NCBI GenBank assembly: GCA_051530055.1 | Contig: CM121341.1 | Span: forward strand, 992,001-1,056,000 | Length of the DNA: 64,000 nt | Reading direction: 5' to 3' | DNA from: Neoechinorhynchus agilis | Lineage: Eukaryota; Animalia; Acanthocephala | In this document: in pieces, positions 2,990 to 53,340 of the stretch | Numbering within the stretch: the first letter of the stretch is position 1 | Layout: each line of letters starts with the position of its first letter | The notes under the pieces: model-generated | The model's input: the letters and a program-made list of their open reading frames with translations, nothing else | Told to the model about the DNA's origin: nothing | Databases searched by the model: none | Position numbers and translations under genes: made by a program

Positions 2990-3183
2990 ATTTGTTTTGT
3001 GCGGACACCCAGACGTTTTTTATTATGCAAATTTTCGGAGAGCAAAGTCTCCCTCTTCAGGCTTTTGGTCATTGCTTGCAATTGAAAAAACTTGCAAACA
3101 ATGACCAAAAGCCTGAAGAGGGAGACTTTGCTCTCCGAAAATTTGCATAATAAAAAACGTCTGGGTGTCCGCACAAAACAAAT
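2990..3183. repeat. Perfect 85-bp inverted repeat with a 24-nt loop
   Basis: 2990-3074 is the exact reverse complement of 3099-3183, checked base by base. Confidence 0.95.
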
Positions 3184-4056: not shown

Positions 4057-4759
4057 ATTGTCAGTTTTCTCGAAACAAAATAGAAATTCTACCATAATCT
4101 GTTAACATTATTCATTTCTGACCCACTAGCGTGGCTAATAAAGGTAGCTTTTCAAATGCAAACTCTCAACTTTTTTTCATCTGAGTTAAAGTAACGACAT
4201 TAAAGTGTAGAAATTTCATCCTGCTCGTTGAGCAGTTCTTGAGCTTTGTCCAAATGATGTCCAGAACTATCAGTCGCATTGTCCGTGAGAAACAACATTT
4301 TCTTTCCCTTCCAACGAATCATGCGGATCCAAAATAAAGTTGTATTTCACAAGATAATCCAAACTTTCTAAATGTTGTGGCATCATGGCTATCGTTGGTA
4401 GAATAGTTTTTTATCGGCTAGTTGATTTTGATTTATTTGATTTTGGTTGGTTAAGTTGTTAGTTGTTGGTTTCCGTTCTTTCCTCCGAATCAATTCGCAT
4501 TTGGAGGATTGAGCAGTGGGGAAGAAAGAGCAGCGGTAGAAATTTGTGTGGGGAAATGAAGGATGGAAAATGTTGGGGCGACGCGAGTGTTCTAAGTGTG
4601 AGTAAAAGGAGAAATGTGGGGTAGAAATTAAGGAAGAAGAGAAAGTGCTTTTGAAAGATTAGAAAAAGGTGTTTTTCTAAGGACAGGAGTTCGGAAGAGC
4701 ATATTAGATAGCACCTCTTGTGAAACGGTGTAATTTTTTTGAATAGTTTAGAAGAAAAA

Positions 4760-5000: not shown

Positions 5001-5598
5001 AGCAGGGCTATTTGAGATTGCGGGTAACGATTTCGAAGAACCGCTCTTTTCGCACCCATCCAAGGTTCTCACTAACTATCCTCTAATCCTCGCCGAAAAT
5101 TTGTTCTCATACAATGCCCAAAAATCAAAAGTCATTTTCCTCTCGGTCATACCGTATTGACTGGTATTATCTTTTTTCATTGCGATTGGCGACGGTCTTT
5201 GGTGTTCAAACCAAACTGCCTAGGTCCTTTAGTGCCTTGGGAAGGCAAAACTCAAAAGGCAACGCAATTCGTGATCCTGAAGATGTAATACCAATCTTTC
5301 TGTTTGAGAATTGTTTCGTACAGGATAAAAAGGTTTTCCATCACGCCGAACTGTATTTAAAGTTTTCTTTTATACATTCTAACTATCATCGTTGCATTTC
5401 CCCACATTTTTGCCAATGAGTAAGATTCTGAGAGAAAAAGCATTTTGAAAACTTTAAATTGCGTTGTTGATTTTCGGTCTTATATAATCACTGAAGTGTA
5501 TATATGAGGTTATACTCAAACCCTCCACAAGGTGGTGCTCTGCTGGGAGTGCCCCATTTTCGGTCAGTCCGATGATTCATAACCCACATCCACTTCCG

Positions 5599-5866
5599 GA
5601 TCCATCATTCACCTCGCCGGGTCTGTCATCCAATCCAATTGCTTATCTGTAATTCGTCCACTCCAAATTCCGACTCTGTCATCCACTCCATCTCTCCGGA
5701 TCCGTCATCCACTCCAATTCCCGATCAGTTATTCAATTCTTACTCCAGATCCATCATTCACCTCGCCGGGTCTGTCATCCAATCCAATTGCTTATCTGTA
5801 ATTCGTCCACTCCAAATTTCGACTCTGTCATTTACTCCATCTCTCCGGATCCGTCATCCACTCCAA
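5599..5866. repeat. Tandem duplication with a 149-bp period, rich in TCCA
   Basis: GATCCATCATTCACCTCGCCGGGTCTGTCATCCAATCC starts at 5599 and again at 5748. Confidence 0.9.
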
Positions 5867-6033
5867 AGTATTCAAGGGGACCCAGAGGTATACCTCGCTT
5901 ATTACTAAAAAGCATTTGCATGCCTTCCGGACGACTATGATTAAAAAGTGTTTGGAATTTTTGAAACTGTTAGATGGAATCATGAACACGTCATTAAATA
6001 CGGAAGAAATGTGACACAAAATATGTCGTCATT

Positions 6034-7651
6034 ATGAACGACAAAAATATTTGCGTGTCTCGTCATTACAAAATGTCCTCAAAATCACGTCCAACTCTGG
6101 ATACGTTACCTGATGAATTACTTTACAAGATATTAGACAAAGTGCCGCCTCACCATGTTTATAACAATCTTAGCAAAGTGAACAAAAGTATGTTTGAAAT
6201 TTTAAACAGTAATTCGAGTCCTTATTGGTGTCAGTGTATGCTAAATGACGACCGTCTACTTATTCCACGAAGAGACAAGAACGAATTGTTTCCTGTGAAA
6301 ACCTCAATGGCGGCGAAAACAGTCATAAACCAATACGATTTCGTCCAGCATCGACCGTTTCGTAATTCTCCAAAGGCAAATTGTGAATTTATGGCTGATG
6401 CTGACACAATACAAAAAAGTGTGGACAACTCTCTGTTTTTTCTTTCAACGTCCACAGAATGCATTCTCATTGGCTAGTTTGTAGCCAATCATATCCTAAT
6501 TAAAAAAAGAGGTTTTTGGTAATTAAAAGTGCATTATTTTTGTTTCTTTGATATTTTTTCGCATTTTTAACTCAAAAACACCGTTGGTTATTTTGGCGAC
6601 TACATCTCTTTAACTATATAAATTTTGGTAAATTTAAATTAGAAAAAAGGCGTATTGGATATAATAGGCGCTTGATGATTTATCCATACTTTAGTTAAAG
6701 CTGTATTCATCGTCATCATCATCATATGAACCAAGTGTATTTATTGGTCGACGTGATGGAGTGATTGAGCTTGTGACATCGCATGGCAATCAAGAAGAGC
6801 GTTTTTTGGGTAGGCAATGGATATGGTCCATCGGATGTAGACCTGATCGCCTATACGCCACTTGTCTTTCCGGGCACGTGAATGTATTTTCTTTGAGTGA
6901 AGAAGGAATTGGTCAGAGTGTTTTTGCTCGAAATCTAAAACAGACCGTATCGGTATCTTTGTGCCTCGTTGAGGACCACCAATTCGCGATTGGATCAAAC
7001 GATGGAACTGTTTATTTGATTGACGAACGAACGGATCATTATCCATGTGACATAATTATTAGGCCCCCGATGGGAAACATGAACCATATTAAGAATCTTC
7101 GGTACATTGGGTTCAATCAGCGTCTTGTTGGAATTTATAAGAACACCGTAGCAGAGGTTGATCTAAGAATGAACGAATTTGTTTTCCCACAATCTAGGAA
7201 TCGTCGTTCCGCCGTACACAGTAAGCTTACAACTTTATGTCCGTCCCCGTGGAATACGAGAGAGTATCCGGTGGCAATGTGTGGCGATATAGACGGACGT
7301 ATATTCGACGTGTTTACCAGTGGCCAAAGTGGCGGAGTTGAAATTGTGGCTGCCGTTAGTGAAGGGCAACGTGTACATTCACCAAAACACTATCTTCATT
7401 GGGTTTCAGCCGTGAGTTGGATGGAAGGAGTGAGAGTTGTCGCTGATAATCGTGGACGAGTGTGTCTATGGCCAAACAGTCCGAAAAATGAACGCGATTG
7501 TATGGAACTCTTGTTTTCTGAACTTGATGAATCTGAACTAACGAGCAAATCGTCTCCGTTTGCGTTCGCAGTTGATGCAGCTCAAGGATCGGTCGTTGCA
7601 ACTGGATGTTGTGGAATTATTTCAAAGTGGACTGGAGGAGAGCGACGGTGA
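6034..7651 (+). CDS. F-box plus WD40-like protein (two ORFs, 6034-6477 and about 6695-7651; splice junction unresolved)
   Basis: F-box motif LDTLPDELLYKILDKV..LSKVNK; WD-like repeats IGSNDGTVYLIDER and CGDIDGRIFDV. Confidence 0.7.
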
Positions 7652-7910: not shown

Positions 7911-8044
7911 TTTTAAAATCCGATTGTTTTCGAAGGCACAATCTTGTGCCTTCTTTTTTATCAAAGTTGCTTTTCAAAACTTACAAGGAACCTTAATAAA
8001 CGCGTACAAGATTGTGCCTTCGAAAACAATCGGATTTTTAAAAA
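7911..8044. mobile_element. MITE-like foldback; related fragments at about 11897-11960, 13204-13240, 18513-18546 and 57030-57085
   Basis: AAAATCCGATTGTTTTCGAAGGCACAATCTTGT pairs with ACAAGATTGTGCCTTCGAAAACAATCGGATTTT; the ATTGTG..GAAATATCGGATTTAAT core recurs at the other loci. Confidence 0.7.
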
Positions 8045-8698: not shown

Positions 8699-10188
8699 TC
8701 AGATTTGAATCATTTGTTCGATGAGTATGTGAGTAACGAACGGTTCGATTGCGTATGTGGTTGTGAAATAAGTAATGATTCCGAGTGTTATAGATATTGG
8801 AAGTGCAGGAAGAGTTTTTTGAAAGAGTGCGAGTAGAATCATAGTTAAAATTAAACCGAAGAGGATAGATGAGATACAGACGAGAGTTGTCGACCAATTG
8901 GTTTCGTGCGAAGCTTTGGAGATTAGAACAGAATAGAATATAAAATCGCCTAATCCGAGCTTAACTCCTTGTTCAAAAGGTGTATAACGACTAGGGATCG
9001 ACGATGCATTCTGCTCTTCCGGTATTCCATTCTCAACAAAACCTGGATCATCAGTTCGTGCTTCATTGTCGTTGGTTTTAGTCATGATTGTGTACATACA
9101 AGTTGATGAATAAACGAGGGACGGGAAGAGTTGCTCGTTTCTTTCCTGAGCTGTCTTTACCAGAATCCGGAGTGGTCCAAATGGTGCAAGAACCGCAAAA
9201 AGATCCCATGCGCAGATGACCGCAAGAACGAACCAACTAGTCCAATCGGGCATGTATTTGTAGAAGACGAGAGCAACCAGCACACTGACTAGAATGAGGT
9301 ACATTTGACGGAGACGGAGAGGACCGTGCCAATGGATTGTCAGAATGCCAGTTATGGCTATGTTCCATATTCCAAACACAACTGAAATGATATCAATGTT
9401 TGCGTTTAAGGTAGCGCATAGATCTGCGAGGTATCCATGCTGCATGAATCTTTTGGTGGCGCTCATCTAGGATATTTCAATGAAAGAGGATTCTGGACTA
9501 CTTAAATGTCGTTATTTTAACTCTTTGTACATTCATGAAGTAGGGAAATAAAGATTTTTGTTTATCATTACAAAAGCCCAATTATCAATTAAAAGCAAAA
9601 CTTGATAGATTAGGGATCAATTGTGAGTTCTTTATCCGATAAAAACAATGAGATTACCTCGTAAGATACCTTTAAGAATTTTCTAAGGTTTCTATTTTTC
9701 CTTAGTTTGGATCATTAGAGTATTTCTGTAAAATATTCACGATGGAACACATCCAAGAGATTCATGCCTTAGAGAATAACGAAGAGCAAAAGGACGGTAG
9801 TGACAGCAAGCCACCCATGGATAATCACGTAGCATCGGAACCTATATAGTAAAATCAGGGCACAGGTCATTAAAGCGACGAATCCGATGAAGATAAGTGA
9901 GTTTGCGAGTGAGATTAAAATCTTACTTGTGGCTGAACCAACTTCAATGATTGGCGTATATATAAGCACCGGGAGTTCGAGTCCACCTTCGATTATTTCT
10001 GGATCGAATAATGACGTTTGATACCCGTGGATGTATCGAACACTAAGACTGGTCAGCAGCATGCAAACCGTTACCGGAATAAAGATTGTAACACCATGTT
10101 TAGGCGCAGTCCGGATCAGATTTGCAATCGCCGCGTGGTTGTTCCGGCTCGAAGATTCACGATTTTGATCGGCACTCTCATTTTGCAT
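8699..10188 (-). CDS. PSEN: Presenilin (gamma-secretase catalytic subunit); exons about 10188-9772 and 9439-8699
   Basis: Motifs IIHGWL, HWHGPLRLRQMYL, WDLFAVL (catalytic Asp), AQERNEQLFPSLVYSS, GVKLGLGDFIFYSVL (GxGD) and LPALPISI (PAL); single anomalous intron. Confidence 0.95.
9442..9767. mobile_element. MITE-like element with about 38-bp imperfect TIRs filling the presenilin intron
   Basis: GCATGAATCTTTTGG..CATCTAGGATATTT (from 9442) versus the reverse complement of the other end, GCATGAATCTCTTGG..CATCGTGAATATTT (from 9767). Confidence 0.65.
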
Positions 10189-10440: not shown

Positions 10441-10737
10441 TTTTTAGACAATAATAAAGTACGGAACGTGCAATCACCACCGTCCGCAAAATCTTAGCTT
10501 CTCTCCTTCCTCGACCGTCGCCATCACGCTGGCAGCATTGCCCCGTTGTACTGCCAGCGAGATATTTTGTCGAAGAAATAAGCCTGCTCGTGCGTCGCCG
10601 GTCGTTTCTCTCAATTTCTTCGAGAGATCCTGGAGCAGAGTGCCGAGCTGCCAAGCGCTCCATACGTATCTACCCCAAAGGGGACAAAATAGTGAGCCCT
10701 TGCTTGTCCCCTTCGGGGTCGAGACGTATGGCGCGCT
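10441..10737 (-). mobile_element. 5'-truncated CRE-like non-LTR retrotransposon with a 15-bp TSD
   Basis: Encodes LRQNISLAVQRGNAASVMATVEEGEKLRFCGRW*; GATTAAATCATTTGT flanks it at 10426-10440 and 10738-10752. Confidence 0.9.
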
Positions 10738-11533: not shown

Positions 11534-12426
11534 TTTGTTACTTTGCTATCCCCGTCTTGGCACCGCACTTGCTCGCAGGGATTGAACAATCCACGAATAA
11601 ATGTAATATTCAAGCGAGAACAAAAGAGCGGTCATTTATTTTAGTATCAATCGACGGGAATTCCACGTCAAAAAATGATCATTTAAATATATGTATTCAA
11701 GGAAAAACTAAATATTTTGAACTCTTTTGGTCTGCGAATAAGTCTTTTTGATTAAATGATCAAAGATTAATTCCTGATCGGATTTTACAATGTTTATTTC
11801 CCCTTTTCTGAGTTTATCTTTGCCGTTTTAATCTTTCTGTTTGAAGATTGAATTGTTCATGTTTTTATATGACGGAAAAATAAAAAGAATTTAACTTACA
11901 AGCAAACTTGATAAACGCGTACAATATTGTGCGCCGAAATATCGGAATCAATAAATTCTTTTAATTATTTCGAAATACGAAAACAAAATTACTTTCTCTT
12001 ACGTTTCCCCGGATTGGCAATTTACTTTGAGGAAAGAAAAAAGCCTGCTTATTTTTATTAATTTCATGGCGCGTTCAAAATTTCACTTTCGTTTAACTAA
12101 ATTTATATTTGCAACCTTTTTTATACCTCTATAAACAGATTTTATATTTCTCAGGGAGAGCCTCATATGGATTTAAGACAGTTTAATATCAGGAGAGAAT
12201 CTTTCTCTTCTGCTATCAGTGGTCGGCCGTTTTATTTCTTCATCTGAAAAAATGCGACAATGCACTTTGATTTCAATTACTTTATTCCATTTCGTACACG
12301 AAGTTTTGTGCTCTGTATGGGTAGAATTTGCACTTTATTTTCTATTGATCAAACGAATTTCTCATTCTTTTTCTTTTATTATTGCTTTGATTTCTGAAAC
12401 ATAATATTTTAGAATTTTAATTTTAC

Positions 12427-12606
12427 TTGACATTTGTACGACCCAGATATAGTTGATTTATTTGCCTAGCTTTCGCTGTTTTACGGCTTCAACTGGGCAA
12501 CACGATCTAACGTCGTAAACACTTGCAAATAATTGCCCAGTTGAAGCCTTAAAACGGCGAAAGCTAGGCAAATAAATCAACTATATCTGGGTCGTACAAA
12601 TGTCAA
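12427..12606. mobile_element. MITE-like foldback, 74-bp arms with 2 mismatches and a 32-nt loop
   Basis: TTGACATTTGTACGACCCAGATATAG..CTGGGCAA (12427-12500) pairs with 12533-12606. Confidence 0.85.
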
Positions 12607-12696
12607 ATTAAAATTAAGACATGCGCCTGGAAAATCAAGCAGCGATTCACGCTATTAGACACTGGAGAAGTTTTAATCCGTTTTAGAATCGCGCTT

Positions 12697-14650
12697 ATGG
12701 TATCGGCATCAAGCCGTGCCACAATAAAAGGAGTAAATAATCTGTTCGGCGGGATGATTCGAACGACCAAATTATTTACACTTTCCATTTCTGGTTGGAT
12801 GTTACTCTCGGTTGTGGACAAGTGAGTAAATCCTATAAAGGATTCTAAATTTCAAATGCAAATAGGACTCCTGAACGCTGTAACATGCATTAACGCTGAT
12901 AAGCTGCATTCAATTCTTAATTCGAGAACAACAAATCCTAAACCACTTATTACAGTATCCAACCATACGAGTTGCATGGATGATCCTTTTATATGGGGTT
13001 AGTCAAATTTGAGATTGTCAGGCACACCACAAAGTTCGATTAGGTGAGGCCACGATTAAAAATAAGCTTTTAAAAGTACTAAAAATGTCAATTGGTTTTC
13101 AATGTCTGCCTTATGTATTTGTGAGTCCGGTGCTTCGATTTGAAAACTCTAAAACAGCAGAGCCCAATCTTTTCGTATACAAAAGGGGTCGGCCTCCAGG
13201 CAAAAGATTGTGAGCAAATATCGGATTTAATAAAATTCCTTCAATTTTTCATCGTAATAAACAAACATGAATAGCTCAATCTTCCAACACAAATTTTAAT
13301 TCTTTCTTTTGGTAGTTTGGCCACCCCGGATTAAAATTCACTAATCTATATTTCCCCGATATTTCACCTCTCGGATAATTCCGACATTTCATCAAGGTTT
13401 GTCATTGCCAATCATTAAAAGACGTTAGCAAATCCTGATAATGTCGGAATTATCCGAGAGGTGAAATATCGGGGAAATATAGATTAGTGAATTTTAATCC
13501 GGGGTGGTTTAACTCAGGAAGCAAATTTTAATGCTTTTCAGCGCAAATCAAACTTCAAACACAAATTTTAAGGCAACTATTTTGAAATGGACGTGGTTAA
13601 TCTATAGCGTTAGAAAGCAAAACCGATAAAAATTAAACCGAGATTTTGCACTCACCATTCTATGAAGTCCGTGGATGTGTTCGGCTCATGGTAAGAGACA
13701 GCAATGAGAAGATCCATCAGGGAAGCGGTATAAGTAGAAGATTAATAAAATTTGTATCTCTTCTGGAAAATATTAAGAAGACAGGGACTCTAGCAACATT
13801 GCGCTACCTTCTCGTTTCCCCTTCGTTCGAACGAAATGCACCGCGGGCGTAGGTTAGGCGTTTATTGTTCTAAAAGATAAAAATGAGCATAAATTTCCTA
13901 ACGAATTGATTCGATTCCCAACTCAATCTTTGTGTCCACTTTAAGGAGCACTGCTTAATGTTTCTCATTTTTGGAAATGTGATATGATAAGATACGGCTT
14001 GGGAGCATCGGATATTCTATTCACTAATCCATTGTTTTCTCGTTTCTTTTCTCTTGGACGAGTGATGGCTGTCAAAAGAGGTGAAGGCTTGCAACAGAAA
14101 TCAATGATGCGGGCCTTGGAACTCCTTGGACGCTGCGAATGGCTTCACATGTTCCCGGAAGGTTAGTATTTCTCCTATAGTTCACTTAATAGTTCCAACT
14201 TATTTGCAAAGGGAAAGTTGTAAACGATAAAAAGATTGGAAGATTGAAATGGGGTTGGTTTTACTTGTCTTCTTTAATGATTTCATATTTATTGCCAAAT
14301 TGACAGGAGTAGCAAGTTTGGTGATTGATGCACAGCTCCGATACGGCCACAGTCCAATGGTTCTTCCAATAATGCATTGGGGATTTGAAAACATTCTGCC
14401 CGTGCATCACTACTTTCCACGGATTAATAAACAAATAGGGATTATCGTAGGAGAAGAATTGGATTTTAGTCATTTGATCGATCAAATCGCTCGTCGTCAT
14501 ACGTCGATGGATCCTATAATTCTCAAGCAAGTGACAATGATTAAAATCACCGAAATAATAAGGGCCAATATGATCAAATTGTACAATCAATTAAACATTA
14601 GAATGATCAGTATAAGTAGAACAAGAGACAACAACAATCTGATCGGTTAG
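12697..14650 (+). CDS. TAZ: Tafazzin (cardiolipin transacylase), multi-exon; 5' structure uncertain
   Basis: Exons give LVGCYSRLWT|RLLN, PLITVSNHTSCMDDPFIWG (12866-12997), GASDILFT..FFSLGRVMAVKRGEG, WLHMFPEG|KV..LKWG and PMVLPIMHWG..ILP..YFPRINKQI..VGE. Confidence 0.92.
13321..13507. mobile_element. MITE with about 68-bp perfect TIRs inside a tafazzin intron
   Basis: CCACCCCGGATTAAAATTCACTAATC..GGATAATTCCGACATT (13321-13388) is the reverse complement of 13440-13507. Confidence 0.85.
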
Positions 14651-17229: not shown

Positions 17230-18262
17230 ACAACCAACATAATATATTTTTAATAATTCAAACAATCTGTTTGAAGCACACTCACCACCTCCCGCCAAAT
17301 TCCAGCTTTTGTCCTCCCTCGACCGTCGCCATCACGCTAGCAGCATTGCCTCGTTGTACTGCTAGCGCGATATTTTGTCGAAGGAATACGCCTGCTCTTG
17401 AGTCTCGGGTTGCCTGTCTCAATTTCTTCGAGAGATCCTGGAGCAGAGTGCCGAGCTGCCGAGCGCTCCATACGTCTCTACCCCAAAGGGGACAAAATAG
17501 TGAGCCCTCGATAACTGAATATATTTCCGTATTTTCCTCCCTTCCGCTGCTGCTGGCTGCGAGGGTGTCCGCACACGTGGCGTCCCAGAGAAGACATATG
17601 CCCTCCCGCCACGGGAAGACCGAAATTCCATCGGGCCTACGGTCGTCTAGTCGACAAAGATGGGCGGGGTTCCAAGATGTTGGGGAAGTTCGCCGTTCTC
17701 AACGCCCGAGAAATTACGCTGTTGATCTCAGAATGGCGTGAGAACCTTTCTCCTGACTTTCGGCAAACGAGACCGTGTCGCCCGAAAGCATAAACCAAAG
17801 ATCCACCTCAACAGCGATGGGGCGTGCATATCGGGAGACCAAGTCTTAAGAACACTGCGATCCTCGTTACCTCATCAGTGAGAAGAGTTCCCACAGATGC
17901 CAGAGGAACAGCTTCCAACTACGCCCCCGATTCTCGTGTCGAAACTGCCAACAATCTAGCCCGGACGACCTTATCGCGAGAACCTGAAAGTAGAGGGCTG
18001 TGAGCTCTCGCGACGAGAGGTCTGTTCCAGATCGTCTGTCTGAGGCCATTCACGGCAACATGGTTAGCGCCTGTCTGCTGGCACCATTCCTCAACCGCCA
18101 CCACGAAATCCTGGTCAAGACAGAACTTTTCCTTCAAAATTTTCTTCGATACTGGTAGGCTCCCCTCAAACGATCCAAGAAAGGCCGGCAAAGCAAGGTC
18201 CACTAGTGCCCGAATCCCCAATCCCCCAGATGACACAGGCAAAGAAGCTTGTTGCCACGCCT
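17230..18262 (-). mobile_element. Longest CRE-clade retrotransposon relic (RT thumb, zinc knuckle and RLE), with stops and frameshifts
   Basis: [99 protein letters not shown] and AVQRGNAASVMAT. Confidence 0.93.
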
Positions 18263-23169: not shown

Positions 23170-24350
23170 GATGAGGAGGAATGATGCCATTAACAGCGTC
23201 TAATTTTTGATTTCAATGAATTTCATTAAACAAGAGTTCGATCATTTTTCCTTACAAAACTTTTGGGTAAAGCAATTTTTAAAGGTCTCGCTTTATTATA
23301 CGACGCTCATTTTACAAAACTTTTGGGCAAAGCAATTTTTTAAAGGTCTCGCTTTATGATACGACGCTCATTTTACAGAAAGTTGCACTCTTATAAAAAT
23401 TTCGGCGTGTTATTTTTATAAAACAAAAACCAACAGCCTTGTAGGTAACAAAATGAGGATGCACCATCTAATTTGTAATTTCAATGAATTTCATTAAACA
23501 AGAGTTCGATCATTTTTCCTTACAAAACTTTTGGCAAAGCAATTTTTAAAGGTCTCGCTTTATTATACGACGCTCATTTTACAGAAAGTTGCACTCTTAT
23601 AAAAATGTTTGAGTGTTATTTTTATAAAGCAAAAACAAACAGCCTCGTAGGTAACAAAATGAGGATGTCATTAGCACCGTCCAATTTTTGACTTCAATGA
23701 ATTTCATTAAACAAGAGATCGATTATTTTGTTTACAAAACCCTTGGGTAAAAGAAATTTAAAAAGTTGTACTCATATAAAAATGTTGGCGTGTTATTTTT
23801 ACAAAACAAAAACCAACAGCCTTTAAGGTAACAAAATGAGGATGCCATTAGCACCGTCTAATTTTTGATTTCAATGAATTTCATTAAACAAGAGTTCGAT
23901 CATTTTCTTTGTAAAACCCTTGGGTAAAAGAAATTTAAAAAGTTGCACTCATATAAAAATGTTTGAGTGTTATTTTTATAAAACAAAAACCAACAGCCTC
24001 GTAGGTAACAAAATGAGGATGCAGCGTCTAATTTGTAATTTTAATGAATTTCATTAAACAAGAGTTCGATCATTTTTCCTTACAAAACTTTTGGGCAAAG
24101 CAATTTTTAAAGGTCTCGCTTTATTATACGACGCTCATTTTACAGAAAGTTGCACTCTTATAAAAATGTTTGAGTGTTATTTTTATAAAGCAAAAACAAA
24201 CAGCCTCGTAGGTAACAAAATGAGGATGTCATTAGCACCGTCCAATTTTTGACTTCAATGAATTTCATTAAACAAGAGATCGATTATTTTGTTTACAAAA
24301 CCCTTGGGTAAAAGAAATTTTTAAAGGTATCGTTTAGTTATACGACGCTT
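23170..24350. repeat. Local satellite, about 6 units of roughly 175-270 bp with higher-order duplication
   Basis: AGGTAACAAAATGAGGATG recurs with its GT at 23445, 23651, 23828, 24005 and 24212; AATGAATTTCATTAAACAAGAG occurs six times. Confidence 0.95.
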
Positions 24351-32480: not shown

Positions 32481-32660
32481 AGGATCTCTCGAAGAAATTG
32501 AGAGAGGCAACCGGAGACTCAAGAGCAGGCTTATTTCTTCGACAAAATATCTCGCTGGCAGTACAACGGGGCAATGCTGCCAGCGTGATGGCGACGGTCG
32601 AGGAAGGACAAAAGCTTTAATTTGGTGGGAGGTGGTGAATGTAAAGAAAAGTAACCAAAT
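32481..32660 (+). mobile_element. CRE-like 3' end fragment
   Basis: QDLSKKLREATGDSRAGLFLRQNISLAVQRGNAASVMATVEEGQKL*FGGRW*. Confidence 0.85.
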
Positions 32661-33979: not shown

Positions 33980-34720
33980 CGTTAGAAAGCAAGTAGCATA
34001 TCGTTCGTTCATTTTAAGATGAATATTTTCACCTTTGTCCAAGGCGAAAGGGGGAATGTTAAAAAAGTTTGTTTTATTTTTATATTTTACGAGTTTGGAC
34101 TTTAAGTAAAGGTGGAAAACATGTAAAATAACTTTTGTTGATCTTAATTTGAAAATTTTGATCTTTGTCGGAGTAGAGAGGTGGAATGCTCGAAAAGTTT
34201 GTATTATTTTTGTATTTTGCGAATTTGGACTATAATTGAAGGTGGAAAGAGTAGAAAACAAGTAAAATAACTTTTTTGCATTTTAGGATGAATCTTTTTA
34301 CCGTTGACGGAGGCGAAACGGGGAATGCTCAAAAAGTTCGTTTTATTTTTGTATTTTGCGAGTTTGGACTTTAATTGAAGTTGGAAAGAGTGGAAAACAA
34401 GTAAAATAACTTTTTTTGCATTTTAGGTTTAATATTTTGACCTTTGTCCAAGGCGAAAGGGGAAATGCTCCAAAAAGTTTCTTTTATTTTTGCATTTTAC
34501 GGATTTGAAGTTTAATTGAAGGTGGAAAGAGTAGAAAACAAGTAAAAGACCTTTTTTTGCATTTTAGGTTTAATATTTTTACCGTTGACGGAGGCGAAAC
34601 GGGGAAATGCTCCAAAAAGGTTGTTTTATTTTTGCATTTTACGGATTTGAAATTTAATTGAGTGTGGAAAGAGAAAAAACAAGTAAAATAACTTTTGTGC
34701 ATTTTAAGATTAATATTTTG
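33980..34720. repeat. Tandem array of about 140 bp units, 5-6 copies, upstream of DPH7
   Basis: GAAAACAAGTAAAATAAC..GGCGAAA.GGGG.AATGCTC repeated at about 34113, 34254, 34394, 34533 and 34675. Confidence 0.9.
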
Positions 34721-35049
34721 ACTTTTGTTAAGAACTGTATTAGGGAAAGATTTTGCATATTATGGAAAGTTCTTCAAAAAGCAATATTGTCAATTTTTCG
34801 TTCCTTGCTCTTTGACGCACACATAAAGACGTTCTTGCTCCGATCTTTGGTTTATGCAGTCGGCTCAAAAAAGGTGCAGCTACAAAAGCTCGATTCGTTA
34901 GTTGCATTGCGTCTTTTTCGAATTAAATACTTATCGTTTTTAGTATTATTTCTTTTAATGTGTGATTTGAATCGCTCACGTTGGTCGCTGCCTCGAACAT
35001 TACAACGCACTCTTGATAATTCAAAATTATTGCAGATTAATTTTAAGCC

Positions 35050-38399: not shown

Positions 38400-39100
38400 G
38401 TGGTGAAATAAATTATTAGTTTCATTTTGCCGATATTTCACGTCGGATAATTATGACATTATCAATTGTTTTTGGAAATCCTAGGAAAATATCGTAATTA
38501 TCCGACGTGAAATATCGGCAATAAACCAGTCAATGAAAATCCACAAGAAAATGTCGGAATTATCCGATGTGAAATACCTGAAATAAATGAGTTAGATTAA
38601 ATCCTGGGGTGTTAAAAGTACCAGAAGGTGGTATATTTTTCCCGAAGACAATAATCCAAGAAATAAATTATTAGTTTCATTTTGGTACTTATAACGCTCC
38701 CATGATTTAATCTGACTCATTTATTTCCGATATTTCTTCGGAAAATTCCGTCATTATCAATTGTTTATGAAAATCCATAAGAAAATGTCGGAATTATCCG
38801 ATGTGGAACACCTGAAATAAATGAGTTAAATTAAATCCTGGGGCGTTGAAAGTACCAGAAGGAAATATATTTTTCCTGAAGACAATAATCCAAGAAATAA
38901 ATTATTAGTTTCATTTTGGTACTTATAACGCCGCTCATTCCGTCATTATCAATTGTTTATGAAAATCCATAAAAAATGTCGGAATTATCCGATGTGAAAT
39001 ACCTGAAATAAATGAGTTAGATTAAATCCTGGGGCGTTGAAAGTACCAGAAGGAAATATATTTTTCCTGAAGACAATAATGAAAGAAATAAATTATTAGT
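38400..39100. repeat. Tandem array of palindromic MITE-like units (about 190-255 bp), same family as 13321-13507
   Basis: GAAATAAATTATTAGT at about 38405, 38660, 38894 and 39084; shares ATGTCGGAATTATCCGA..GTGAAATA..TTAAATCCTGGGG with the 13.3-kb MITE. Confidence 0.85.
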
Positions 39101-39669
39101 ATTCACTGCATCAATGACATGCGCCCAAGATTGTCAACGGAGCCATTTACTCACGTTGCTTTCGCTAAGAGCGCATATCGTCTCCCACGTGATGGATTCC
39201 TTATTTAGCATAATCTGACGATAAGATAATATCTGAGCGAGATTTTGTTGCTCGTAGATGCTAAAAAAATAAGAGTCCGGATCCGTCCCCTATAATCGAC
39301 TTGTATTGTGGATGTTTGTAATAGACGAAAAGTTTTAGTTTAAAAGTTCAAGAGTACTTAATTCATATGCCGTGCATCTTAGTTTTAATTTGTCTAACAT
39401 GCGCAAACGCTGTGTTTTTAGCATTATGTTCATTATTTTGCCCGTGAAATTTTAATATCTGATTTTTTTTAGAAGAACTTAGAATTAACTTTAGAAAGCG
39501 TCTTGACATCCTTAGATTTCACAAGAAAGTCTAATGCCGCGAACTTTTCGCCGGATTTTACTAAACAGAATAATTTTTTATTCTTTACGAACCCAGAATA
39601 ACCAATATTTAGATGTGTTACTTTTATTTCAACACTCAATTATTTTTTAGTTTTTTGTTGTTGTTTTTC

Positions 39670-40536: not shown

Positions 40537-43235
40537 ATGCTAACCTACAATTCAAAGCTTTTCCGAGTCCCGATTATTGTCCGACGAAGGTACCAACCTG
40601 ATAGTGCATTTTAGCTAATTTTAGAAGGAATAATACTTACATTTTTTAGCGCTTCATGCTGGGCTGGAGTGGTTCGTGGGCCTCCCGATCCTGTCTTTGG
40701 AGTTGCAGAAGCGTTCAAGAAGGATTCGAATCCAAAGCGAGTGAACTTGTCAGTAGGAGCGTATCGATCTGACGAGGGGAAGCCGTGGGTTTTAGGATCT
40801 GTTCGAAATGTAAGTGCTTAACAATTCAATAATGAAATTCCTTTTTTCTAGGCAGAGAAACTCGTTTGTGATGCAAAAATGAACAAGGAATATGCACCGA
40901 TGCTTGGAATCGATCAATTTCGGGATTTAGCAGCAAAGCTCGCTTTTGGCGAAGACTCTGAAGTGATAAAGGAGAAACGGGTAAGTCGGGCAACTAAACC
41001 CAAGCCTTTGAAATATCTGAACATTGATTCAAAATAACCGACCGTGTTCTATTGATACGTGAGTTCTTGGCTCCTGTAAATCGCATACCTCATAAACCTG
41101 TTGATTCAAAATTCACTTTAATCAGAGTAATTTGAATAAGCAACTCCATACCATATTTAAACTTTTCGAGAACGTGAAAGGCGAACATTGATATTTCGAA
41201 TTTTGTACCGGTTTTCCATGAACAACTAGAGACTCACATAACCCCAAAAACTTATTTATTCCAATTGGGCGCAAATTTTTATCCTTTAAACGATAACAAC
41301 AGTCAATACTATTTACTTCTCTGGCTGAAGTTAAAAAATCGCTTATTCTCATTTCCTTTATTTTTGTCATGGGAAAGCTAAAAATAAATTATATTTCTTT
41401 AAAAAAAGAATGCAACACTTCAATCATTAAGTGGAACAGGAGCACTACGCATTGGAGGAGAATTGATAGTAAGTAATTTTATTCAATCTCAAGGATTCTT
41501 TAAAATTTTACCTTTAAAAGAAACAATTTTACCCGGGCAAAAAGGTGATATACCTTCCCGATCCAACTTGGCCAAACCATCCGAACATTTTCAAGTATGC
41601 CTCGAATTTTGTCAAACCGCTAGTTCTCTCTTACCTATTAAAGGTCTGTCGATCTCGAAGTTCGAAAGTATAGGTACTATTACCCGAAAACCAGAGGATT
41701 GGACACTTCTGGTCTTCTGGATGACATCGAGGTTGATATCTACTTTGAATTAAATATAAATGATTATCCCTTTAAAAAAGAAAATGGAACCTGGCTCAGT
41801 TATTCTTCTACATGCTTGCGCACACAATCCAACCGGAGTTGATCCAAACGTTAGTATCTCTAAAAAATATAACAAGAAATCGATTTTTTTAGAAATCAGA
41901 GTGGAAGGCAATAGCTGAAAAGATAAAGGTTAATATAATTTTAATTCTAAATGCATATCTAACAGCTTGTTTTTTAGGGGAGAAAACTTCTCCCATTCTT
42001 TGATATGGCTTATCAAGGATTCGCGAGCGGATCACTCGCGTTTGATGCATACTCAGTCCGACATTTCGTCAATGACCAAAACATCCAAATTTTATTGGCT
42101 CAATCATTCGCTAAAAATATGGGACTTTATGGTATTTTCCTGGTTTTTCTGACTGATTTTATAAAATTGAACAGGTGAACGAGTTGGAGCATTCACTGCT
42201 GTCTGTTCCTCCAGCGAAGAAGCCACAAACGTGCTAAGTCACTTGAAGAGAGTTGTGCGATCGATTTACAGCAATCCACCCCTTCATGGTGCCAGAATCG
42301 CTCAGACTATCTTATCGGATCCAAAATTAACTGAACAATGGTAAGTTTCATTTGAGGTTATGAATGTTTTTTATTTGTAGTTTTTGAAAATGGTAAATGT
42401 AACATGAGAAAAAAAATCATCCTTTTCAAGGATCGTAGTGAATCCACGGAATCATAATCAAATCCGATTTTTAGTCACTTACAAAAATCGCTATTATGCT
42501 TTTACCTATTTTTAGCATTTTAATATTTTTCTAGTAAAATTCATCGGAAATCTCAAAGGATTTTTGTGAAAATCGAACTAAATCTTATTTGGAATTCCAG
42601 ATTAACTTTTAAACCGTCCACTGAACGTGTAATCAACAAATGAATTCACCATAACTGATACAGCTAATAAGATTGGGGTATTATCACTAAACAGTATTTT
42701 ATTTCATTTCTCGAATCAACTCTCAAACATTTGGCTCGGTGGCGGTTATCACTTTTATTTTGGTTCAATCTGAAGTTTGCATCATTTCAAAGGATATAAC
42801 AGCGGATTATCGGATAATATTTTTGCGTTCTATTAAATTTAGACTCGGCATTGCCGAAAAAAGATCGAGAAATTTTCATACATTTTTGCGACATCAACAT
42901 GAAGAGGTTCCAATAAAATACGTTTCACACCGTGATTATATTACTGATTTCGTTTTCTCAGGTACGGCGAAATGAAGACAATGTCAGGGCGTATTATAAA
43001 AATGCGAGAGTTACTGCTCAAAAACTTGAAAGATGCCGGGAGTACATTGAGTTGGAAGCATGTTGTGGATCAGATTGGAATGTTCTGCTACACCGGTCTT
43101 ACTCCTGAACAAGTCGAACGCATAACGAAGGAATATTCGATTTACATGACAAAAGATGGACGGATATCGATTGCTGGACTTAATGCCGGAAATAATGCTT
43201 ACGTTGCAAGGGCCATACATGAAGTTACCAAATAA
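40537..43235 (+). CDS. GOT2: Mitochondrial aspartate aminotransferase, about 11 exons
   Basis: [86 protein letters not shown] (PLP lysine), [21 protein letters not shown] and DGRISIAG; all introns GT-AG. Confidence 0.97.
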
Positions 43236-47666: not shown

Positions 47667-50580
47667 TCAGCATAGTACACAAGACTCCACCCTGAGCCTA
47701 AGGTAATCCATAAAATAACCAATTTCTGTAGATGTCTGAAGAGGTGGATTTTGTCCACGAAATATTAAATAGCATGAATACTTCTACACGAACAAGAACT
47801 TTAGTTGAATTTCTTTTTATAGATCTCATGCGACTATATAAACGGAGGATAATAGTGGATTGGAAATTCGATTACCTAGGAAATTCATAGTGTCGAAACG
47901 CTACTATGACTACTCAGTGAGCCCGGCGTTGAATCATGGTTGCACCACAATGGCTTCGAATTCAACAACGAAGAATCTGTTCGCTTTTTAATGCAGTCAT
48001 TCATGAGGTTAAAATTTCGATTTAAAGCTTCTATAGGACAAATTATTCAACACACCACTCAAATAGTAGGCTTCATTAAATTAGGAAAGGAGGCGAGCAT
48101 ATCTCCTGTCTTATTCAATGACAAGTGATGCATATTATTCATCTTTTGCGCGTACTGGAGAAGTACCTTTACCAAGAGGAGACATAGGGAGTTTCAAATC
48201 AACGATGTGAGCCTTAGCGCAAAACGATTCAAAATCTAAAATAGTAACAAATCTTATTGTTGGTAGTATTAAAATTTATAAATTATTTACCTTAAAAGAG
48301 AGGGAGAATAGCCCGTTTTTATAAAAATCTTTTACAGAAAATACCAGTCTTTGAATTCGAGAAAAAAAACCGCAACGCAGACATTAAAAAAGAAAGGAAA
48401 CGAGAAATACATTTTTTATTTGCCCAATCTTTTATGCCAAATGCTCGTTAAGTAAAATAATATAGACATTAGAGAACAGCTTTATTTCTCACTTAGATCT
48501 TAAAGACATAAAGAATGCCATTGCGTGCCCTCGGTATCAGAATAATTCTAAAGCGTGGACCCAACGGAAATCTAGAGAATTTCATCTGAAGATCACGAAA
48601 ATGTTCAGCATTGTGCACTCTATCATGGATCCGATTATTTTCTCAGCTTCCAAAACTTAAAACTCGAATCAAGTCAGAGTAATTAAAGTAGAACGTTGTC
48701 GGGGAAAGATTAATCTTTTCAAACTTGAGGGCATATCTTTAAATATTAGATGCCATGTTTCTAAAGAACCAGAAAAAAAGCAATTATGTGCGAAGGGGTT
48801 TTTTGATTGGTCGAACGTTATCTTTGCCCTTATTTTTAATTGTTTTGCCGATTAACCTTGATTTCTAGTCTTTTAAGCCAACTAAATTCGGTTTCTGGTA
48901 ACGACGCACTTACGCTGACAAGTGGAGCAGAACGACATAAAGGTTTTCGATATAACGTTCGTTGCTCCTTGTAAATTATTACGGGACCTTCACACACCCT
49001 TTTCTAAAATGCATTTGTTGGGTTTGACTCCCGACACGTTAGTCAGTTGCACAACCAAACCATTTTATAGAAATGAGTGCAGTTGTGTACGGTCGTGGTG
49101 GTACGGCATCGAATTTAAAAAGGGTTTTTGTGGTTCGATTAAAAAAGTTGAGCGATGAGAATAACGTTGGTATTTTTTCAAAGCTCCTTGGAATACACTG
49201 AATCAGATTGGAGATTGTATCTACAACACCATTTATGAAATTCAGACTATTATGCTTTTTTTAAAGGATCTCATAAGCATAGACCGTGACTACTTTGTCT
49301 CGTGGAAAGGAAAACGCGATAGGCTTTTAGAGAAAAAGGAATCGAATTACGGAGATTTACAGATGCGCTCTGCATTCCATCAATAGTGCCTGTATGGCTT
49401 AAGTAATAGGACCGTTAAGGATATAAGCCGGGTGTGCTGAAAAGAAATGCTGAGATAACAAACGTTACTAGAAACACAGAAACGGGAAACGCTTGGGGTT
49501 TAATGCCGCTTGAAGTTGACATTTATAGACCTTGATAAAACTAATAAATCATATTTGGTAAGCTTATAAAAAATCCGCGATTTGGTAGAATGTTACCGAG
49601 AAAATATATGGGGCTTGGCAATCAAGGTAATAAATGTTTTGAGGACGGTAAAACGCATGTACAATAATTTAAACATTTAAATCTAGAACATTCGTTAGCT
49701 TCTTTTTTGCACGGATAAAATAGGTTCTCTTTCCGGTCGAAACGATTAAGACCGTTATTGGTTGCGCTAATTTTATTGAAGATCTGGCTCAATAACCAAC
49801 GAAACTTTTATATAATAAAGTAAGCAAAACAATGCAAATGTAGCAAGAAACAAAAAGGAATTGTCTAAACATGATCGTTTCACTAAAACCTTTTAGGAAT
49901 TCATCAACTTCATAAAGCTCTTAGAGATAACCGAAGGCGAACGCTGCTTGAGTTCATCATCATACAAAAAGATAAATTTCTAAAACCTTTTTACACTAAG
50001 CGAAGTTTAACCTATAATGCATTTTACGATTTTTACAAAATGAACCTAATATGCACCGCAACAATTTTTGATAATGACGAAAATGAGGCTGCTACAATAT
50101 GGCGGCTTCTGTTTAGCTTGGATAATACCCCTTGGACGAATCAAGACAGTCGGATATAAAATAAAAGCGATCTCTTATATTCTAAGCGTACCTATAGAGT
50201 CTCATCATCCACTCAATAGAAATTGGCACGGTGTGATGATAAAATCTACTTCATAAGAACAACGAAAAGTATGGTGACTATTATTGCATCCCAATTTTCA
50301 GATCTAGCAGAGGATTTTGTTAGATTAAACGGAATTCAGTATAGATTTCAATGGGAAATCGAACAAGGTCACTTGTCGTTTGTGTGTACAGATCTGATTC
50401 CATGCGACAGACTTTAATATCTCCGAGTATCAATGAGGTAAGCGGAATGAGAGATGTGAAGAATATGGAAACATCTGCAGAGTTATGCCAGATCCATTTA
50501 AAGGGTAGAATTACCGAACATTACCTTGAAAATAAACGAAGTGCCAATGTTCGCGTGTGAAAATGTTTGTCATTTAATTT

Positions 50581-51352
50581 TTTTAGCGATATTAAAACAA
50601 TTTTTTAAACAAAACTCCGAGAAAAGTCTAATGAACACCGTCATTTGAGAAAAATCTTTGTTTAATTATAAGACGCAGAACGGTTTAACTTAGTGGTTTC
50701 AGTCTTTTATCGAGAAACATAAAAATTTTTGATCCCATAAAATTATTACGGCGACAATAAAAAACCTGGCATTTATTCTTTTAGCGATATTAAAACAATT
50801 TTTTAAACAAAACTCCTAGAAAAGTCCAATGAATACTGTCATTTGAGAAAAATCTTTGTTTAATTACAAGACGCAGAACGGTTTAACTTAGTGATTTTAG
50901 TCTTTTATCGAGAAACACAAAATTTTTTGATCCCATAAAATTATTACGGCGACAATAAAAAAACCTGGCATTTATTCTTTTAGCGATATTAAAACAATTT
51001 TTAAACAAAACTCCGAGAAAGGTCCAATGAATACTGTCATTTGAGAAAAATCTTTGTTTAATTACAAGACGCAGAACGGTTTAACTTAGTGATTTTAGTC
51101 TTTTATCGAGAAACACAAAATTTTTTGATCCCATAAAATTATTACGACGACAATGAAAAACCTGGCATTTATTCTCTTAGCGATATTAAAACAATTTTTA
51201 AACAAAACTCCGAGAAAAGTCCAATTAATACTGTCATTTGAGAAAAATCTTTGTTTCATTATAAGACGCAGAACGGTTTACCTTAGTGATTTTAGTCTTT
51301 TATCGAGAAATATGAAGATTTTTGATCCCATAAAATTATTACTACGACAATA
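50581..51352. repeat. Tandem array of about 198-bp units, 4 copies
   Basis: TTAGCGATATTAAAACAATTTT..GACGCAGAACGGTTTA..GATCCCATAAAATTATTAC starts near 50581, 50779, 50978 and 51175. Confidence 0.95.
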
Positions 51353-53246
51353 ATTAAACCGACAATTATGGCAGTCGAAAAGTTTTGTTACAATTTTTGG
51401 AAAATACCCAAAAGTCGCTGTAAATTTCTTGAGTCGAAAAAATACAGGGACAGGCCATAATTCAATTTATCAAGCTACACAGTCGTTATCAAAGTGTAAA
51501 ATCAGTGAAGATTATAATTTTTTGACTTTATAGACGAAAATGTCCTCGTATCTTGATGTAAAGATAGAGGAAAAAGTCATACCTGAAGAACTTTGATCGA
51601 CGCCATTAATTGCATTAATATACGACTGTTTTCTTAATAGTTGTGGTTTTCGTTGCCCGGCGTCACTTGCTGTTCGTGGTAAGCTTGCATTTATAACGTT
51701 TGGAGCAAATCTCCGTTCAATACTAGCCTAAAATCTCCATAAACTCGATTATTGCATACTTCAAATTCGCTTGCCTGCACGTTTTGAGTCGGTTTTGGGT
51801 TCCAGCTCATGTGATAACTGGCAGTCATGTTGTTTTTTGAAATCATTTTAGCAATTTCCTTATTATCTCACATACATCGACGAATATCTGAAATGCTGTG
51901 GATAGCAATAGACACTTTATAGAGGCTTATCGAATCTCGACGACCACCACCACAACATATACACTTCTCTAATGCATTTGGTATATGTGCAAGCCGATCT
52001 CCAGACATTTCGGTGCTGGTGTTTTGGAGGAATTGTGTTTGCAAGGATGACCTATCTCAGAAGTTCCTCTCCGTCAGTATTCACCTTTATCCGTCCTTGC
52101 TAACTGTCAATTAAAGGACATGGATAGATTGAAGAAAAAAAAGAGTTTCGGCATTCTAACGAACGAAATTCTGAATATACATATAAAGAGAGCGAGAGAG
52201 AGCGAAAAGCCGATTGGCTGACGTTCTATTTTTCCGCGCATGTGAGCATATTCTGCACACTGAAGGCAGACTCACTTTCCGCGTTCATCGCACTTTTCTA
52301 CAAAGACTGTGCAGTCTAAAGCAACTGACTGGTCGGTCTACTCCTGGGCTGGGGTTGGGAGGTCATAGAACACAAAAGGAGAAGCGTTCAATTGTGTTTT
52401 CGAAATGCGTGTACGTGCTCGATGATAAGAACAAAAGGAAACGGGGATTTATATAGCAACGAAGGAGCGTTAACGAAGAAATGCGATGGAAATGTATAAA
52501 GAAGCTGACAGATTGTTGATTATAAATTTATCTTGAATCTACGCGTCCTATCTATTAATGAGGCAGCATTTGAAGGTCCGAGGAGACATTCCTCATGAAT
52601 ATTCTCAGTTCAAGCTCGGCTAAATCAACACATAAAACCCCAAGTGGCTTTTTAACGGATACACATTATGCGCTGTTTGGAACAGTCGCTGCTCGGGCTA
52701 ATGTATCCATAACCCGTTATGGCTTTTGTTTTTGGATATCACCACTTCTTGATCGTAATGGTGATAATCAGCTTCAACCTAAGTCGATGCGAGAAATCCC
52801 CTTTAGTTACAGGTGGCTTAAATCACATTTGCGACGTGAGTGAACGCAAAAATCACTGTTGTTTTTTCGTATACAATTGAGTTCATGTAGAGAAGTATGC
52901 GTTAAAAAGAATTTTTAAAGGACGAAAAACGTGCTTCAAAAGTTTCCACGATGTAGAGTCGCAAAAGGTTCTTAAAAACCAATTGAAACTTTCCAAAAGT
53001 CAAGAATCTCATGGGAAACATTGACTTCGAAACTAGCGTTAAATAAGTGCTTGTGGCCTAAAAACTAATAGAAACCATTAATCGATCTTGAGACAAGTTG
53101 AAGAAGATTTATGTAGGTTTAAAAGCAGTCAAGTGCTGCATGTAACTATCTTTTTAACTGAGAATACTTCTATTGCTCCATGGATACTTTTAAGGCATAG
53201 GGAGAAGCGCCCGCAAGATCTGTTTAAATAACCTGCGATTTAGTTT

Positions 53247-53340
53247 CGAGGCAATGCTGCTGGCGTGATAGCGACAGCCGAGGAAGGAGAGAAGCTAAGA
53301 TTTTGTGGACGGTGGTGATTGCACGTTTTGTACTTTAACA
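53247..53340 (+). mobile_element. CRE-like 3' end, same subfamily as 10441-10737
   Basis: RGNAAGVIATAEEGEKLRFCGRW* followed by the shared 3' UTR start TTGCACGTT. Confidence 0.85.

Follow-up and report, generated by a model that had tools for sequence, protein, structure and literature searches.

Structure of the presenilin locus

The presenilin gene of the acanthocephalan fish parasite Neoechinorhynchus agilis consists of two open reading frames split by a single interruption. It lies on the minus strand at 8699-10188 of the window, that is, of the whole 64,000-nt stretch of DNA that was analyzed. Exon 1 (9772..10188) is an open reading frame of 139 codons (MQNESADQ...LLLFVIL) that extends from TM1 to the middle of TM3 and aligns with residues 76-178 of human PSEN1. 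Exon 2 (8699..9439) runs from HGYL through the stop codon and encodes both catalytic Asp motifs and PAL (WD at 9214-9191, GLGD at 8956-8942, and PAL at 8809-8798). The product belongs to the Pfam Presenilin family (PF01080), with a score of 378.3 bits against a cut-off of 34.3 and with the YD/WD, GLGD, and PAL motifs all located, and it matches human PSEN1 (PDB 5a63 chain B) with an E value of 2.9e-91. No further intron is found outside 9771..9440. The first-pass annotation had described the gene as otherwise intact and intronless, and this description is upheld. N. agilis proteins are strongly divergent, and the presenilin has ~40-44% identity to other presenilins. Searches of protein databases returned no N. 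agilis transcript product, no exon-1 protein, and no other acanthocephalan presenilin.

The interruption occupies 332 nt on the minus strand (9440..9771, TAAGGC...TGCAG) and appears to be a newly gained intron. Its GC content is 31%, compared to 42-45% in the exons, and it has many in-frame stops. Exon 1 ends with ...TTG CTC TTC GTT ATT CTC (9772), which is followed directly by TAA GGC ATG AAT CTC. At the other side the interruption reads ...GATTCATGCAG before exon 2, which starts with CAT GGA TAC CTC at 9439 and is preceded by ...GAT TCA TGC AG. The 3' end thus has the AG of a U2-type intron (...TTCATGCAG|CAT) and resembles the local acceptors.

The two ends of the interruption are inverted repeats of each other. 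The 5' arm (9723..9767, minus strand, GCATGAATCTCTTGG...) begins 4 nt within the interruption, and the 3' arm (9442..9485, minus strand, ...CCAAAAGATTCATGC) stops 2 nt short of exon 2, so that the CAG acceptor (9440..9442, minus strand) takes its C from the end of this arm. The tips of the arms, at 9442-9456 and 9753-9767, are complementary at 14 of 15 positions, with the outermost 10 nt perfectly matched (GCATGAATCT), and the match reaches ~45 nt (33/45) when one gap is allowed. Among 1721 further segments of 332 nt from the window only two scored as well, as did one of 5000 shuffles of the ends. In a predicted RNA fold the ends of the interruption pair as a long stem (z = -2.6), and no structured RNA or self-splicing intron was found in the window with Rfam. 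The interruption therefore has the terminal inverted repeats of a MITE or other non-autonomous DNA transposon. These repeats had been proposed from the sequence, with an arm starting 4 nt after the exon and another ending at the C of CAG within a 332-nt interruption; the coordinates and layout prove exact, and the repeats stand above both controls. The two arms differ at 27% of positions.

The splice join required by the protein

Only one of the joins tested preserves the length of the protein. Spacing was measured from the HxW motif before TM3 to the HW.GP motif after TM4 in the presenilin homologs returned with both motifs, and it is the same in 113 of 113. Joining CTC to CAT reproduces this invariant spacing exactly, and the resulting product is gapless against residues 166-306 of human PSEN1 (PDB 5a63 chain B). 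Since no other tested join keeps the spacing, a family-conserved mRNA needs an intron that begins with TAAGGC. The 5' boundary of such an intron is TA (9771-9770) and not the GT or GC of a U2-type donor.

All GT/GC...AG pairs around the site that keep an open frame were enumerated, and the pair 9780/9440 is the only one near family length. Its donor, GTTATT (9775..9780, minus strand), is the sole in-frame canonical donor nearby, and it would be used with the same acceptor at 9440. Acceptors at 9467 or 9450 put hydrophilic residues into TM3 or alter the spacing. When the GC with which the repeat begins is taken as donor, TAAG stays in the mRNA, which shifts the frame and introduces an in-frame TAA. 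The possibility that a frameshift in exon 1 compensates was also rejected, as the alternative frame makes the spacing longer and places Ser and Lys within TM3. By inspection, a junction of the bulge-helix-bulge (tRNA endonuclease) or IRE1 type does not fit either: the 4 nt beside the stem are unable to base-pair with exon 2, and the 5' site is without the G|C that such a junction requires.

The GTTATT donor provides the most plausible of the alternative explanations, and it is still an unlikely one. According to this alternative the sequence is correct and the allele is fixed, the working intron is a GT-AG intron of 341 nt (9780..9440, TTC|GTTATT...TGCAG|CAT), TM3 is three residues shorter, and the TAAGG at the boundary is either left over from an earlier donor or coincidental. 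In its favor, no other in-frame GT-AG solution exists near the site, the flanks are of high sequence quality, and N. agilis proteins are strongly divergent. However, use of TTC|GTTATT removes V-I-L from TM3, which breaks the 113/113 spacing by three residues and lowers the Pfam score by 8.4 bits, to 369.9. The first-pass annotation had already stated that the join that keeps the spacing has no GT, that the GC after the AG gives a stop and a frameshift, and that the upstream donor deletes three transmembrane residues, and the enumeration agrees with it on each point. The expected mRNA sequences are GTTATTCTC+CATGGATAC for the family-length join and TTGCTCTTC+CATGGATAC for the join that uses the GTTATT donor, while retention of the interruption would take exon 1 into TAAGGCATGAATC.

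Introns of neighboring genes

Splicing in the neighborhood is of the ordinary type. The gene for mitochondrial aspartate aminotransferase (GOT2; 40615..43235, plus strand) has nine GT-AG introns and served as a local control. Aligned with mouse mitochondrial AspAT (3hlm), its product matches from end to end over 401 residues, with one internal gap of one residue. The donors are GTAAGT in four introns and GTATGC, GTTGAT, GTTAGT, GTTAAT, and GTATTT in the others, so that GTT-type donors like the one upstream of the presenilin interruption are in use here, a point in favor of the 341-nt intron. The acceptors are A/T-rich sequences followed by AG. The introns are 42-52 nt long, apart from two of 428 and 621 nt. 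In a RhoGAP gene, an intron of 344 nt (GTAAAG...TTTAG) was positioned from the two halves of the Pfam domain. All ten homology-checked introns of neighboring genes (nine in GOT2 and one in the RhoGAP gene) are therefore GT-AG, and this neighborhood gives no sign of unusual splicing or of tolerance for non-GU donors. No terminal inverted repeats were found in the three long introns tested. The presenilin interruption stands out locally on two counts, its inverted repeats and its 5' end.

The GenBank gene model

The deposited model of this gene lacks its N-terminal part. Exon 2 is identical (100%) to the GenBank protein ACOME3_000156 (257 amino acids), which consists of exon 2 and a spurious MN start taken from within the interruption (the protein begins MN+MSATKR). 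This match assigns the window to chromosome CM121341.1 of the N. agilis assembly GCA_051530055.1. Exon 1 has no GenBank annotation, and no gene is called there. The part of ACOME3_000156 that lies inside the interruption (9467..9536, minus strand) comprises a 6-nt exon, ATGAAT at 9536..9531, and a 64-nt intron, GTACAA..CCTAG at 9530..9467. This exon structure is the unique GT-AG solution for the annotated range. For genes with several introns the GenBank range and protein length are ambiguous, and homology-checked junctions were used instead.

The model was built by BRAKER with RNA-seq from 74 worms (genome paper). A BRAKER model without exon 1 is what would be expected if the true junction looks noncanonical on the assembly and is filtered out. 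A canonical, RNA-supported GTTATT junction, on the other hand, should have given a full-length model, judging from the way such a pipeline works. On the same grounds the annotation pattern weakly favors an assembly error or non-GU splicing over the version with the cryptic donor. Some transcripts may retain the interruption, as the annotated 64-nt inner intron could indicate.

Taken at face value, the model suggests that a promoter within the insertion drives an N-terminally truncated presenilin, the annotated product, and that exon 1 may or may not yield a polypeptide of its own. The annotated start does lie within the insertion, exon 1 ends in a stop, and there is an in-frame ATG (9466) 27 nt ahead of exon 2. 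This explanation is nevertheless extremely improbable. A split in the middle of TM3 would drop TM1-3, which are present in all known presenilins, there is no sign of a promoter, and a gene finder that avoids a noncanonical junction would give the identical model. The junction is the reason why the deposited presenilin lacks TM1-3, and with such a truncated model the gene would be misjudged in surveys of acanthocephalans that address gene content or the components of Notch and gamma-secretase.

Loss of ancestral introns and age of the site

The distribution of introns in rotifer presenilins suggests that the interruption is a recent gain in a gene that had lost its older introns. Two bdelloid rotifer presenilins were mapped exactly onto their genomic loci (L002 1501-3699 and L004 1501-4505). 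Each has 12 introns, all GT-AG, and N. agilis shares none of the 12. No bdelloid intron is found at the N. agilis site: the interruption is in phase 0, and the nearest bdelloid intron is in phase 2, 14 nt downstream, where in both rotifers it forms one border of a 68-nt exon. The comparison with orthologs that had been proposed earlier, to look for an empty site, thus shows the position to be new and lineage-specific. The absence of all 12 rotifer introns together with an interruption at a new position argues that the gene was first stripped of its ancestral introns and gained its single interruption later. GOT2 has retained nine introns, so the loss of introns from presenilin is specific to the gene and retrogene-like. 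No obvious poly(A) remnant is present downstream of the presenilin stop codon.

The insertion seems to have been tolerated for some time. The exons and motifs are intact in spite of the 27% divergence between the repeat arms, which suggests that the insertion has been removed from the mRNA during this period.

Relationship to mobile elements and introners

No second copy of the element is found in the 64-kb window, whether by a pattern search with three mismatches, by blastn with a word size of 7, or by sensitive local alignment. The best other match is 24 nt at 4183-4206 and is not above the null expectation. A different dispersed repeat in the same window was readily detected in four copies. 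In JGI metagenomes, neither a scan for the paired inverted repeats nor a search for relatives returned anything.

The flanks of the interruption do not contain a target-site duplication of the type made by a transposon superfamily. An AG is directly outside each arm (9769-9768 and 9441-9440), as the first-pass annotation had observed, and this part of its description stands. Its interpretation of the two AGs as a 2-bp duplication does not, because the implied empty site has an in-frame stop; a match of 2 nt is also expected by chance in 1 of 16 cases. A Tc1/mariner-like TA duplication (9771-9770 and 9433-9432) would leave an in-frame empty site with two residues missing, and the repeats would then be nonterminal. 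For a duplication of the PIF/Harbinger type, a TAA is present on the left side only. The segment that has to be removed is TAAG (GTAAG without its G), the element, and AG, rather than the element and a duplication.

Introner families, which Gozashti and colleagues reportedly treated in 2022, are defined by many near-identical copies. The presenilin interruption has one copy in the 64-kb window, a sample of low power for this purpose, and removal of the element with one duplication does not restore the frame. The absence of a second copy in 64 kb and of a frame-restoring duplication leaves the term introner-like, under which the interruption had first been described, unsupported. The other introns are plain GT-AG, and the search for further introns with these repeats, covering the 64-kb window and the three long introns tested, was negative. 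With no second copy and no duplication that gives an intact empty site, the argument for a mobile-element origin is the inverted repeats themselves. An inverted-repeat insertion of mobile-element origin is accordingly a probable explanation of the interruption, short of a proven one.

The data on excision also bear on the possibility that the gene or allele is disrupted. Either the element was inserted into an intron-free gene or the donor G was lost, the transcript is misspliced, and the locus is a young pseudogene or a null allele. An in-frame TAA directly after exon 1, the lack of a GT at the required site, and the start of the GenBank model within the insertion, which hints at transcripts that retain it, are compatible with disruption, and 44.7% of metazoan BUSCO genes are missing from the N. 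agilis assembly (genome paper). Both exons are open, however, and every catalytic motif is intact. The diverged repeat arms suggest that the insertion is not recent, and no precise excision restores a frame of family length: a stop remains with the AG model, and with the TA model two residues are missing and the repeats are nonterminal. A disrupted gene is therefore decidedly unlikely.

Other repeats in the window

The window contains several kinds of repeats. The dispersed repeat mentioned above is ~160-230 nt long, and its four copies (10471-10700, 17279-17508, 32481-32642, and 53247-53321) have 80-92% identity. One of them, which holds a 34-nt hairpin (10654-10737), lies ~280 nt ahead of the start codon of presenilin. 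The open reading frames of this repeat have no Pfam match, and it could represent a SINE or a LINE tail. An open reading frame on the minus strand at 17922-18260 contains ...LPVSSGGLGIR... and also has no match in Pfam; we take it to resemble the region after the reverse transcriptase domain of non-LTR retrotransposons. On the plus strand at 5576-6011, just upstream of a WD40-like gene (6073-7651), there are overlapping open reading frames in several frames that derive from a short, coding-like repeated unit (...HLAGSVIQSNCLSVIRPLQI...).

Many long, near-perfect palindromes or foldbacks occur between genes, at 2990-3183, 12416-12617, 13314-13514, 965-1349, 7911-8042, and 38427-39033, with arms of 37-92 nt that are 93-99% complementary. 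Inverted repeats are common in the N. agilis genome, but outside genes. Tandem arrays are found at 50571-51353 (198 nt, 4 units), 34108-34728 (139 nt, 4.4 units), 23585-24106 (177 nt, 3 units), and 38745-39105 (191 nt, 1.9 units).

The missing donor G

The 5' end of the interruption resembles a splice donor without its first base. The sequence TAAGG (9767..9771, minus strand) equals positions +2 to +6 of the local consensus GTAAGT/GTAAGG, and the chance of finding it at the exact spacing-preserving boundary is ~1 in 1000, a coincidence that the reading with the GTTATT donor would have to accept. The assembly has CTCTAAGG at the boundary, and with the donor G restored it would have CTCGTAAGG. 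The boundary is most simply read as a GTAAGG donor from which the first base is absent, and a G would thus be expected there. Either the consensus is in error at this base, or the deletion is a genuine allele in the worms that were sequenced.

The quality of the assembly around the site is high. The hybrid assembly was made with MaSuRCA from Illumina (17 Gbp) and R9.4 Nanopore data, partly from a pool of ~50 worms. No frameshifts were found in the flanking 1158 nt of exons, in the 1.2-kb GOT2 coding sequence, or in the RhoGAP control, and the missing G is not within a homopolymer. With deep Illumina data and with flanks and control free of frameshifts, a consensus error at one given base is improbable beforehand. 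If the deletion is real, as an allele or fixed, splicing would use the in-frame GTTATT 9 nt upstream, or it would fail.

U2-type splicing requires G1 of the 5' splice site. A spliceosome that cuts before UA conflicts with this requirement and with the canonical introns of the neighboring genes. Genuine non-GU splicing at CTC|UAAGG...CAG|CAU, in which the cut sites are set by a terminal stem that clamps the ends of the intron, is for this reason very improbable. The required join does have UA-AG ends, and a stem that is perfect over 10 bp and imperfect to ~45 nt extends from +5 to -3. Comparable systems exist elsewhere (PMC11282704), but the borders at this site fit neither the Fritillaria nor the euglenid pattern (PMC11282704). 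In addition, the ten neighboring introns have strong consensus donors and give no evidence of a relaxed spliceosome, presenilin is a single case, and nothing was found with Rfam.

The explanation that we prefer, and to which we would give about an even chance, is that the interruption is a newly gained ordinary U2-type intron, derived from an inverted-repeat insertion, with CTC|CAT as its true join and with a donor G that was lost from the assembly by a one-base deletion (an artifact or an allele). Judged from the sequence, the interruption would be spliced out of the mRNA. The missing donor G is not evidence for a special splicing mechanism. The first-pass annotation had named a shifted or noncanonical donor, a disrupted allele, and a 1-nt error as the possible outcomes, and this was the correct set.

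A newly gained U2-type intron of this kind could have arisen in the following way. The presenilin of the N. agilis lineage would first have lost all 12 ancestral introns. An AT-rich sequence of ~326 bp with terminal inverted repeats would then have landed in the coding region in the middle of TM3. It would have been removed between CTC and CAT through an ordinary ...TGCAG acceptor and a former GTAAGG donor, and in the RNA the inverted repeats may have folded into a stem that brought the donor to within a few nucleotides of the acceptor. In the assembly the donor would have lost its first G by a one-base deletion, whether through a consensus error or because of a real allele.

Comparison with known systems

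Single spliceosomal introns derived from transposons, in which a MITE or other DNA transposon is inserted into an exon and then spliced, are known in many eukaryotes (PMC11282704). The presenilin interruption is like them in its species-specific position in an otherwise intron-free gene, in being short, AT-rich, and non-coding with terminal inverted repeats, and in having splice signals at or beside the ends of the repeats, with the acceptor AG just outside. Unlike them, it has no frame-compatible target-site duplication and no other copy in the 64-kb window, and its donor is incomplete in the assembly. The site also recalls the classic loss of G at +1 with a cryptic donor nearby, as G1 is the only part of the donor consensus that is missing, and an in-frame GT is found 9 nt upstream. 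In contrast to that situation, the absence of the G in N. agilis may be in the animals or in the assembly only.

The IE1 introners of Micromonas pusilla take their 5' GT or GC from the element and co-opt the 3' AG from the duplication (PMC11282704). The N. agilis element similarly starts with GC and is followed by AG, and the element together with one AG would form a 328-nt GC-AG intron. However, removal of these 328 nt leaves TAAG, and with it an in-frame stop and a frameshift, and no further copies are found in the 64-kb window.

Introns with unusual borders are found in two other groups. Fritillaria borealis has MITE-derived introns with AG-AC or AG-AT borders that are common genome-wide, and the non-conventional introns of euglenids have pyrimidine|purine borders and a paired CAG/CTG at +4..+6 and -8..-6 (PMC11282704). 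The presenilin interruption shares with both a non-GT 5' border, inverted repeats at its ends, and a lineage-specific site. It belongs to neither group. In contrast to Fritillaria the borders are UA-AG, with 10/10 neighboring introns GT-AG, and in contrast to the euglenids they are C|U and G|C, with pairing that starts at +5 and ends at -3. Fritillaria and the euglenids have such introns throughout the genome, while the neighboring introns of N. agilis are all canonical.

A real intron here would be a clean and datable case of intron gain in an animal: a gene without the 12 ancestral introns has one new intron at a position that no relative uses. Since single cases of this kind are already known in other eukaryotes, its value would be illustrative rather than conceptual. 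If non-GU splicing were true, a non-tunicate animal would be removing a transposon-derived UA-AG intron, and this would be the first sign in Syndermata of a tolerance for mobile-element-derived introns like that of Fritillaria or Euglena. Only real non-GU splicing would bear on how spliceosomes come to tolerate introns from mobile elements.
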